Assembly (NCBI GenBank): GCA_977016875.1
Contig: CDRNST010000085.1
Span: forward strand, 496,001-560,000
From: Pavona decussata
Lineage: Eukaryota
Length of the DNA: 64,000 nucleotides
Reading direction: 5' to 3'
The translations under genes and the position numbers were made by a program. The notes under the pieces are model-generated. The model saw only the letters and a program-made list of their open reading frames with translations, was not told where the DNA came from and ran no database searches. This document shows, piece by piece, positions 54,368 through 56,203 of this stretch (its first letter is position 1; the number at the start of each line of letters is the position of its first letter).

Positions 54368-56203
54368 ATGTTTCGATTGCGTGTTTTCTGCCTCTTGTCG
54401 AGTTTTCTCATTCCAATCATAACACTTTCGCGAGCGTTTGTTGAAGCCAGCGACGAACAAAATGAGCACCACGTTCGTGAGTTTCGAAATCAAGAGCCAG
54501 AGGTAAGTTTGTATTGTTACCTTCATTAAGATCTATTTTTTATGGAATTATAACTCGAGATGGTTTTAGAAAGGTAAGTTGTGTTTGTATATACGTTACT
54601 AAGGGTTTACTCATGTTGCTGGTGTGTTTAAACGTAATGTTAAAAGTATTCTCAACACAGCAAACATTTTAATCATTTACTCAAAGTCCTGTTAGTTGTT
54701 TTATTGATATTTCTGTTAGGCAAGCCCTCGTTGGTTAGGGTATTAGAAAGTTAGTTTGACACAAATTTAGAGTTTTCAAGTTGTTCAAACAACACTTTGG
54801 AGTTTTGTAAAATAGTGAAATTATGAAGAATTAACTATGATCACACACCGGCTTTGTAGTTGATTATTGCAATTAAACAGCAAAACTAAAAACGCAATTT
54901 CGAGTAAAGACGAACTAAGTTCTCGTAAGTCAAGAGCTACATTAAAGCTGTATGTAAAAGAACTGGTCCCCATTAATTTTATGGCTTATCTTCACGATGT
55001 TGTGAGTCTTTATTTTAAGGATTTCATTTAAATTTAAATTAACTCAACCTGAAGAAAACTGATAGTGTAATGTGGACTCAAAAAAGACGAAAATTCTTGA
55101 TGTCAGTTATTCAATTAGACCGCCAAATTTCGTATTGCAACTACCATAAGGTTTTTTTATTTTTGCTGAGTTTACTTTGCTTTCCTATCGTTTAGACACT
55201 GGCCTCAGGTGATGACGCGCAAAAACAAGAGGAAGGCTGGAATGATGCGCCTAGCGCTCTTAGAATCGCAAATCCTCAGCGACCCTCGAATGTCGATTCT
55301 GGGTGCATCTGCGGAGTTACCTCATTCATTTGCTGTGGAAGAAAGCGAACTTTCCTGATAGTACGTTTTCACGGTTACTTTTGGTTCATTCACTAAAGTC
55401 AGTCAGTTGATCAAATCTGCATTTAAAATCTAACGTACAATGATGATTTATACTTGTACATACTTTACAAAGAATCCTTCCGAACCATCTTAGTTAGCTT
55501 CTTAAGCTGTATTAGGGTTTCTGCAATATTTGCGTTTTTTAGATTATTCCACATTTTCGAAAAGGCGTCTTCTACGCAAAAGAACTGCTTAATTTTGCGT
55601 CTTAAACTTTCTAAGTACTCTCGTCAGAAAGGCTTAATCGCTTTAGATTTTCTTTTTTATTTGTGACGACAAATTTGCGTTTTTTTTAATGAAATTTGAC
55701 GTCCAAGTTTCATAGCATTGGAAATTATAAGTGCTTTTTCTGGGGCACCCGACAAGAATATTCAAGAATATATTTCAAATGTCGTTTCCAGTTTTTCCAA
55801 GATCGTTTTAATCCCTGGCCTTTAAAAGGGATATTTGTGTATCCTAAAAAAGCTTGACCTGACATGTTTGGATCCTTTAGCTGAATGCTTAAGTCATAGA
55901 AAATTTTAAGGAGGAGGTCTGTATCCTTAGAATTTTTCCAACGTTTGCTTTCTATTACAGCGGAGAAAGAAATGTCATTTAGTGCAGGAATAGACTGAAT
56001 GCTTCGATTTACGATTCACCCACCCTAAAAGCACACTAATTATTGATCAGTTATCTATCATGTTGTGGTCCCAAAATCCTCCATAAATGAAGTCGAACCA
56101 GACACACTTTAAGCTGAGTAATTTAAGATATGTCTTCTTACAGGTAAAGAAAAACCGGAATATGGTAGGAAGGAAGGCTGGCTTCGACGATCAAATATGG
56201 TGA
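54368..56203 (+). CDS. secreted 4-Cys amidated prepropeptide, copy 3 (119 aa); exons 54368-54502, 55196-55360, 56144-56203
   Basis: MFRLRVFCLLSSFLIPIITLSRAFVEASDEQNEHHVREFRNQEPE|TLASGDDAQKQEEGWNDAPSALRIANPQRPSNVDSGCICGVTSFICCGRKRTFLI|VKKNRNMVGRKAGFDDQIW*. Donors GTAAGT/GTACGT, acceptors TTTAG/TACAG, AATAAA at 56220. Absent from the ORF track. Confidence 0.83.

Follow-up and report, generated by a model that had tools for sequence, protein, structure and literature searches.

A candidate family of secreted four-cysteine peptide precursors in stony corals, with a conserved core and a variable amidation signal

Peptide signalling in corals is known almost entirely from short linear amides recovered via repeat-based searches. 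Established cnidarian neuropeptides are short, lack Cys and usually also lack acidic residues (Koch and Grimmelikhuijzen 2020, PMC7523074), and the main survey of hexacoral neuropeptide genes in that work lists no Cys-containing peptide. Like the genes presented here, the cnidarian amidated preprohormones described there, for instance those of Antho-RFamide and GLWamide, combine a signal peptide with acidic spacers and a C-terminal Gly followed by basic residues, and the coral precursors bear no sequence similarity to the cnidarian neuropeptide families listed (PMC7523074). The likeness extends to the absence of an N-terminal basic site, to Gln or X-Pro as the point at which trimming stops, and to the number of peptide copies, which ranges from one to several, single-copy precursors being known. 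The products differ, as the known cnidarian amides are mostly about 4-10 residues long, without Cys and with an obligatory Gly, while the coral peptide is about 20 residues long, with four invariant Cys and a dispensable Gly.

Small two-disulfide conotoxins have C-C-CC or CC-C-C frameworks and often end in a Cys-amide. The coral peptide resembles them in size, in having four Cys with a vicinal pair and in the frequent C-terminal amide, but the analogy is one of form only: conotoxins come from another phylum, with a different signal sequence and precursor layout, they are hypervariable where the coral core is conserved, and no sequence relation is seen in solved structures. Damicornin, a cationic coral peptide of about 40 residues, has six Cys, is C-terminally amidated and is preceded in its precursor by a dibasic site. 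It shares with the present peptide the coral origin, the signal peptide with an acidic propeptide and the C-terminal Gly for amidation, whereas the peptide encoded here is nearly neutral, with four Cys and no preceding dibasic site. The known cnidarian toxin and antimicrobial peptide (AMP) families (ShK, defensin-like, ICK, Kunitz and damicornin-type) are likewise recognised by six or more Cys in a known framework, against the four of the core described here, which are spaced 1/6/0. Mature cnidarian toxins usually follow directly on a dibasic site, while the genes under study read R-I-A-N-(P/H)-Q-R-P-S in this region, and R-R or K-R is found in a few distant relatives.

The window, i.e. the whole 64-kb stretch of Pavona decussata DNA that was analysed, contains three paralogous three-exon genes and one broken fourth copy. 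Adding the exon lengths gives precursors of 119 aa (copy 3), 119 aa (copy 2) and 116 aa (copy 1). Their features are as follows, with the evidence in brackets.

54368..54502, plus strand: copy 3 exon 1, 45 aa, from the ATG through the signal peptide into the acidic propeptide (ORF and three-copy alignment)
55196..55360, plus strand: copy 3 exon 2, 55 aa, with variable propeptide, conserved block and T-F-L-I at the exon end
55277..55336, plus strand: copy 3 predicted core peptide, 20 codons from Gln to Cys-Cys, including C-x-C-G-x5-C-C
55337..55348, plus strand: copy 3 Gly (possible amide donor) and R-K-R (furin/PC-type site R-x-K-R) (sequence)
56144..56203, plus strand: copy 3 exon 3, 19-aa basic tail and stop (acceptor TTACAG/GTA)
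45478..45612, minus strand: copy 2 exon 1, signal peptide, ATG at 45612 (ORF and alignment)
44571..44735, minus strand: copy 2 exon 2, 20-mer as in copy 3, followed by GRKR (alignment)
44589-44627, minus strand: copy 2 core (sequence)
43737..43796, minus strand: copy 2 exon 3, tail and stop (alignment)
37178..37312, minus strand: copy 1 exon 1, signal peptide, ATG at 37312
36207..36371, minus strand: copy 1 exon 2, Ala7/Thr18 variant of the 20-mer, followed by GRKR (alignment)
36225-36263, minus strand: copy 1 core (sequence)
35412..35462, minus strand: copy 1 exon 3, 16-aa tail with an earlier stop (alignment)
59353..60311, plus strand: broken fourth copy (alignment to the other copies)

The splice sites are canonical and conserved in all three intact copies; in copy 3 the donor of exon 1 reads GAG/GTAAGT, and exon 2 lies between the acceptor TTTAG/ACA and the donor ATA/GTACGT (borders marked by slashes). 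Judged by eye, exon 1 encodes a signal peptide with a basic start, a hydrophobic stretch of 15 residues and S-R-A before the cut. Exon 2 holds the block Q-R-P-S-N-V-(D/A)-S-G-C-I-C-G-V-T-S-F-(I/T)-C-C, succeeded by G-R-K-R and four further residues. The context reported earlier for this block was reproduced, with A-L-R-I-A-N-P upstream in copy 3, ALRIANH in copy 2 and ALKIANH in copy 1, and GRKR downstream in all three. The block is not a chance feature, since the paralogous genes align over more than 2 kb including their introns, and since it recurs in other corals. The basic tail encoded by exon 3 varies among the copies and their relatives and is taken as a C-terminal propeptide that would be discarded. 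The motif N-M-V-G-R-K in exon 3 of copy 3 was considered as a second amidated peptide and rejected, its Gly being Glu in copies 1 and 2. Two runs of N are present in the window, at 1836-2118 and 20707-21028.

Four presumed-RNA runs with the same species label were compared with positions 54300-56300. The contigs of one of them (X6) cover the three exons of copy 3 only: one contig stops at 54502 and continues into exon 2 sequence, two begin at 55194 with the final letters of exon 1 in front, and a further contig joins 55359 to 56143. This last joint represents the predicted GT..AG intron at 55361-56143, the aligner being one base off because the transcript has G at 55360, as have copies 1 and 2. 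Both splice junctions are confirmed in this way by RNA contigs of one public run. At least two variants are expressed in X6, with Ala or Asp at peptide position 7; their additional differences within the core (55288, 55309, 55315 and 55318) are synonymous, and those just upstream of it (55260, 55263, 55269 and 55275) change residues. The three other runs (X5, X10 and X14) gave no contigs on 54300-56300.

Relatives were sought by database searches run per exon. An exhaustive HMMER search with exon 2 alone as query (E = 5.5e-16 to 1.7e-05) identified as true relatives two adjacent genes of Desmophyllum pertusum (KAJ7394484.1 and KAJ7394485.1) and one gene of Oculina patagonica. A profile search yielded a second Oculina gene and, among coral assemblies and transcript contigs, about a dozen further members, one of them (P0019) clearly from a spliced mRNA. 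The Oculina proteins are KAL9969866.1 and ACROYT_G022133. Every relative found is unnamed, “hypothetical” or “uncharacterized” in annotation. The proteins of Desmophyllum and Oculina are true homologues of the window genes, with the same type of signal peptide, core motif, basic site and exon ends, but differ in that most contain two cores, the first closing exon 1 and the second encoded by exon 2, with an acidic spacer between them; the window genes have lost the first core. The second cores of both Desmophyllum precursors align with the window block at Q-R-(P/S)-S and G-K-K-R. Members of the resulting family set (P0002, P0004, P0005 and P0010-P0022) have a signal peptide, four Cys spaced 1/6/0, a basic cluster and an exon end four residues later. 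Among 20 family cores the four Cys are invariant with fixed spacing (1, 6, 0), the Gly after the second Cys is nearly so, and a basic cluster follows in 19, giving the furin/PC consensus after CC or CC-G; the residues x-L/F-x-K behind it, at the exon end, are fairly conserved.

Five hits of the HMMER search (P0001, P0003 and P0006-P0008) are repeat, Kazal or low-complexity artefacts and not relatives. P0001 (2350 aa) consists of about 41 tandem repeats resembling the propeptide motif E-E-G-W-N-D-A-P..L-R-I-.-N, with 47% identity, and is probably a translated satellite or a chance match. Pfam has no family for the window exons or their relatives, a PDB profile search gave no match at E up to 10, the core motif was absent from the literature by full-text search, as was any description of the family, and full-text searches on Cys-containing cnidarian neuropeptides returned nothing describing it. 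A scleractinian-restricted short secreted protein, XP_027037039.1 of Pocillopora, has been reported as a marker of larval neurosecretory cells (PMC12225738), and the core motif is absent from the supplements of that study. As far as these searches reach, the family has not been described before, and its known members all come from stony corals. Processed peptide precursors of cnidarian type are as such a known kind of molecule; the family, its four-Cys frame and the Gly that is present or absent are new to the literature searched.

The present genome has five intact loci of the family besides the broken copy, all in a segment of about 210 kb on one contig (C85). Two of the intact loci, L004 (G000:C85:728055-731129) and L005 (G000:C85:739711-742836), are distant single-core paralogs about 180-190 kb further downstream; in both, exon 1 encodes the core, D-K-R-R or R-K-K-R comes next without a Gly, and near-identical ORFs occur in coral assemblies from ENA (P0010-P0013). 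Copies 2 and 3 lie on the two arms of a duplication that is inverted head to head and at least 3.5 kb long (53511-57000 versus 46648-42803; 86-91% identity), with start codons 8.7 kb apart and introns that are 93-94% identical. Copy 1 is older, its introns being 81-83% identical to those of copies 2 and 3. A search with the exon 1 ORF led to P0022, an intact two-core gene that shares its signal peptide with the window genes and is represented by contigs from five runs of a single study (L022-L026). The five contigs are 99.5-99.9% alike and 76-90% identical to the window copies, and therefore stem from a related species or from a paralog absent here. Compared with P0022 and the broken copy, copies 1-3 lack exactly the first core, a net in-frame difference of 81 nt that leaves the splice donor in place. 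Exons 1 and 2 of the ancestral gene would then each have encoded a core, and the window genes would descend from a copy in which core 1 was removed by an in-frame deletion of 81 nt. As read from the alignments, this loss is older than the triplication, and all three descendants are intact.

Exon 1 of the broken copy retains a remnant of the first core, disrupted by a preceding in-frame stop, a frame shift and two internal stops, and lacking its first Cys; the copy has no exon 2 and an exon-3-like end. A second degraded exon-3-like piece with an internal stop is found at 61137-61200 (plus strand), about 0.9 kb after exon 3 of the broken copy, and a G-rich/C-rich low-complexity insertion (about 60840-60990) lies between the two. 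Just beyond the broken copy, two adjacent ORFs on the minus strand (61635-63285) encode a reverse-transcriptase (RVT_1) and a GIY-YIG nuclease domain, a combination typical of a Penelope-like retroelement.

Purifying selection on the core had been proposed from the window copies, and both a regional analysis and the comparison between species agree with it. Over the 24 codons from Gln to K-R, the method of Nei and Gojobori returned the same counts as reported before, i.e. five synonymous and two replacement changes (D/A and I/T) between copies 1 and 2, and one synonymous and no replacement change between copies 2 and 3. Summed exon by exon with the same method, dN/dS between copy 1 and copies 2 and 3 is 0.11-0.15 for the core, 1.1-2.5 for the exon 2 propeptide and 0.75-1.4 for exon 1. 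The excess of synonymous changes within the core rests on small numbers (binomial p = 0.013), and the near-identity of copies 2 and 3 says little about selection because their inverted duplication is recent. Between L022 and the window copies, one replacement and 0-4 synonymous changes separate the 20-mers, against five replacement and 0-1 synonymous changes in the last 18 propeptide codons. The signal thus comes, on these codon counts, from copy 1 and from other species, the latter making the point more strongly than the counts within the window.

In all five contigs of the closest relative found (L022-L026) an Arg codon (CGA) stands where the window genes have Gly (GGA), giving R-R-K-R, and every position of the L022 20-mer matches the state of some window copy (it shares its Asp with copies 2 and 3 and its Thr with copy 1). 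The closest relative has, by its codons, lost the amidation signal without any other change to the predicted peptide. About half of the family cores have R, A, D, N or L after CC. The cores with Gly at this place are those of the three window copies and P0021, one core of Oculina and, in Desmophyllum, both cores of one gene plus the second core of the other gene; one Desmophyllum core has G in one sequence and A in another, and the first cores of two-core relatives often lack it. With other residues in place of Gly both in the closest relative and in half of the family, the amide cannot be essential to the function of the family, and the idea that it is a selected feature is not supported. The original prediction was to fall if Cys or GRKR were freely lost among orthologues; this holds in part, since loss is frequent for the Gly, whereas the Cys and the basic site are retained in all or nearly all cores. 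Amidation of the window products is feasible, given that loci for PHM-type copper monooxygenases are present in this genome. At the N-terminus, Gln is kept in the close sub-branch, where Q-R-(P/S)-S occurs in the window copies, L022 and three Desmophyllum cores (another Desmophyllum core has L-P-R-P), but is P, H, K or R elsewhere. Cnidarian N-terminal trimming is unspecific and stops at Gln or X-Pro (PMC7523074), a rule that fits copies 1-3 and L022, none of which has a basic site before Gln. The more specific proposal of stepwise removal of X-Ala and X-Pro dipeptides suits copy 3 (IA-NP-Q); copies 1 and 2 and L022 have N-H-Q and do not fit it.

We propose that the signal peptide is removed from the precursor first, and that a furin/PC-type convertase would then cut after the R-K-R that follows the core, a carboxypeptidase trimming the basic residues. 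In this genome the exposed Gly would probably be converted to a C-terminal Cys-amide, and the N-terminal propeptide would be trimmed, most likely back to Gln, which would cyclise to pyroglutamate. The product would be a peptide of about 20 residues with two disulfides, its minimum conserved unit being C-x-C-G-x5-C-C, and may act as an extracellular signal of the neuropeptide or hormone type. The processing logic proposed here matches the published cnidarian rules (PMC7523074). That the genes represent a new coral prepropeptide family, yielding a four-Cys peptide cut by a furin/PC-type enzyme and used in signalling, is the reading we favour, at somewhat better than an even chance, with processing, disulfides and role being predictions. 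The exact form predicted here, a 20-mer from pGlu to Cys-amide, falls rather short of an even chance: the spliced and transcribed gene, the constrained core and the basic site speak for the 20-mer, while the amide Gly and the Gln are not family-wide. The nearest named neighbours of P0002 in a protein language model are mostly neuropeptide precursors, with scores of 0.78-0.83 that lie below the reliability level of the tool; its Atlas model (pLDDT 0.47) predicts no folded domain, and AlphaFold2 on the 31-residue core alignment was uninformative (pLDDT 52). Set beside the established cnidarian neuropeptides, the length of 20 residues, the four Cys and the Asp of copies 2 and 3 argue against such a peptide. 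An intronless ORF for a class-A GPCR about 7 kb from copy 1 was considered as the receptor and rejected, as PDB matches and a retinal Lys mark it as an opsin:

28041-29090, plus strand: opsin ORF, intronless class-A GPCR of 349 aa, likely Met at 28056 (PDB matches)

Among solved structures it is closest to the rhodopsins of squid, jumping spider and cattle (E 2e-44 to 1e-36), and it contains D-R-Y and the retinal-binding Lys in F-A-K-T-S-N-I-Y-N-P.

The mature peptide may also begin elsewhere than at a pyroglutamate, i.e. after the Arg (P-S-N-V...), after the Asp or near the first Cys, and be shorter and, in some species, non-amidated. The Arg after the Gln position is indeed conserved more widely than Gln itself (Q-R, P-R, H-R, K-R, R-R), K-R or R-R stands at the place of Q-R in some relatives (P0018 and P0019), and only the C-x-C-G-x5-C-C unit is family-wide. 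We nevertheless hold a shorter N-terminus to be somewhat unlikely, with Q-R-(P/S)-S maintained throughout the close sub-branch, the stretch from Gln to the first Cys as constrained as the remainder of the core, and Arg-Pro bonds being poor substrates for convertases. If, on the other hand, the basic cluster were left uncut, the gene product would be a small secreted protein in which Cys motif and basic tail act jointly, for example in adhesion, in the matrix or in skeleton-associated cross-linking. Small taxon-restricted secreted proteins bearing Cys are reported from secretory cells of coral larvae (PMC12225738), the tail is rich in Lys and Arg, and the residues after the basic cluster are moderately conserved, which a discarded spacer would leave unexplained, although constraint from the splice site may account for the x-L/F-x-K motif. 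The tail itself varies greatly in length and sequence (4 and 31 aa after the last core in the two Desmophyllum proteins, 16-19 aa in the window, with an earlier stop in copy 1), R-x-K/R-R is kept with high fidelity right after CC(G), and the two-core precursors resemble polyproteins, all of which makes an uncleaved protein quite improbable.

The same precursor and processing could instead deliver a toxin or antimicrobial peptide, used in defence or venom, from gland cells or cnidocytes. The family is typical of such peptides in being small, disulfide-rich, lineage-restricted and tandemly duplicated with a fast-evolving propeptide; amidated Cys-rich peptides are known in corals (damicornin), and the C-x-C...CC pattern recalls small conotoxin frameworks, with no sequence similarity found. 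The mature core is, however, strongly conserved between species rather than diversifying, the net charge of the predicted 20-mer (about 0 to +1) would be poor for a cationic AMP, the window copies lack the dibasic site directly before the core that is usual in cnidarian toxin precursors, Pfam and PDB hold no toxin-family match, and two cores with an acidic spacer in one precursor are more typical of prohormones. A defensive role is on these grounds the less likely reading, though a serious rival. The conserved core, its near-neutral charge, the two cores with acidic spacers, the missing dibasic site and the language-model lead favour signalling over a toxin or AMP, and are not decisive.

Single- or two-copy precursors with Cys, such as those described here, are missed by repeat-based searches and by gene callers. 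A four-Cys peptide that is conserved, transcribed and restricted to corals is a candidate for synthesis and for assays of larval settlement, polyp behaviour and orphan receptors, and equally of defence. A Gly that comes and goes while the 20-mer stays fixed also cautions against taking G-K-R as proof of a functional amide. The family may even provide the first cnidarian neuropeptides or hormones to be constrained by disulfides (bicyclic, four-Cys), confined to stony corals, with its own receptor, and with amidation switched between species and paralogs by single codon changes from G to R, A or D, a speculative reading to which we give a low probability. If true, such switchable amidation would constitute a natural experiment on what amidation contributes to peptide signalling.
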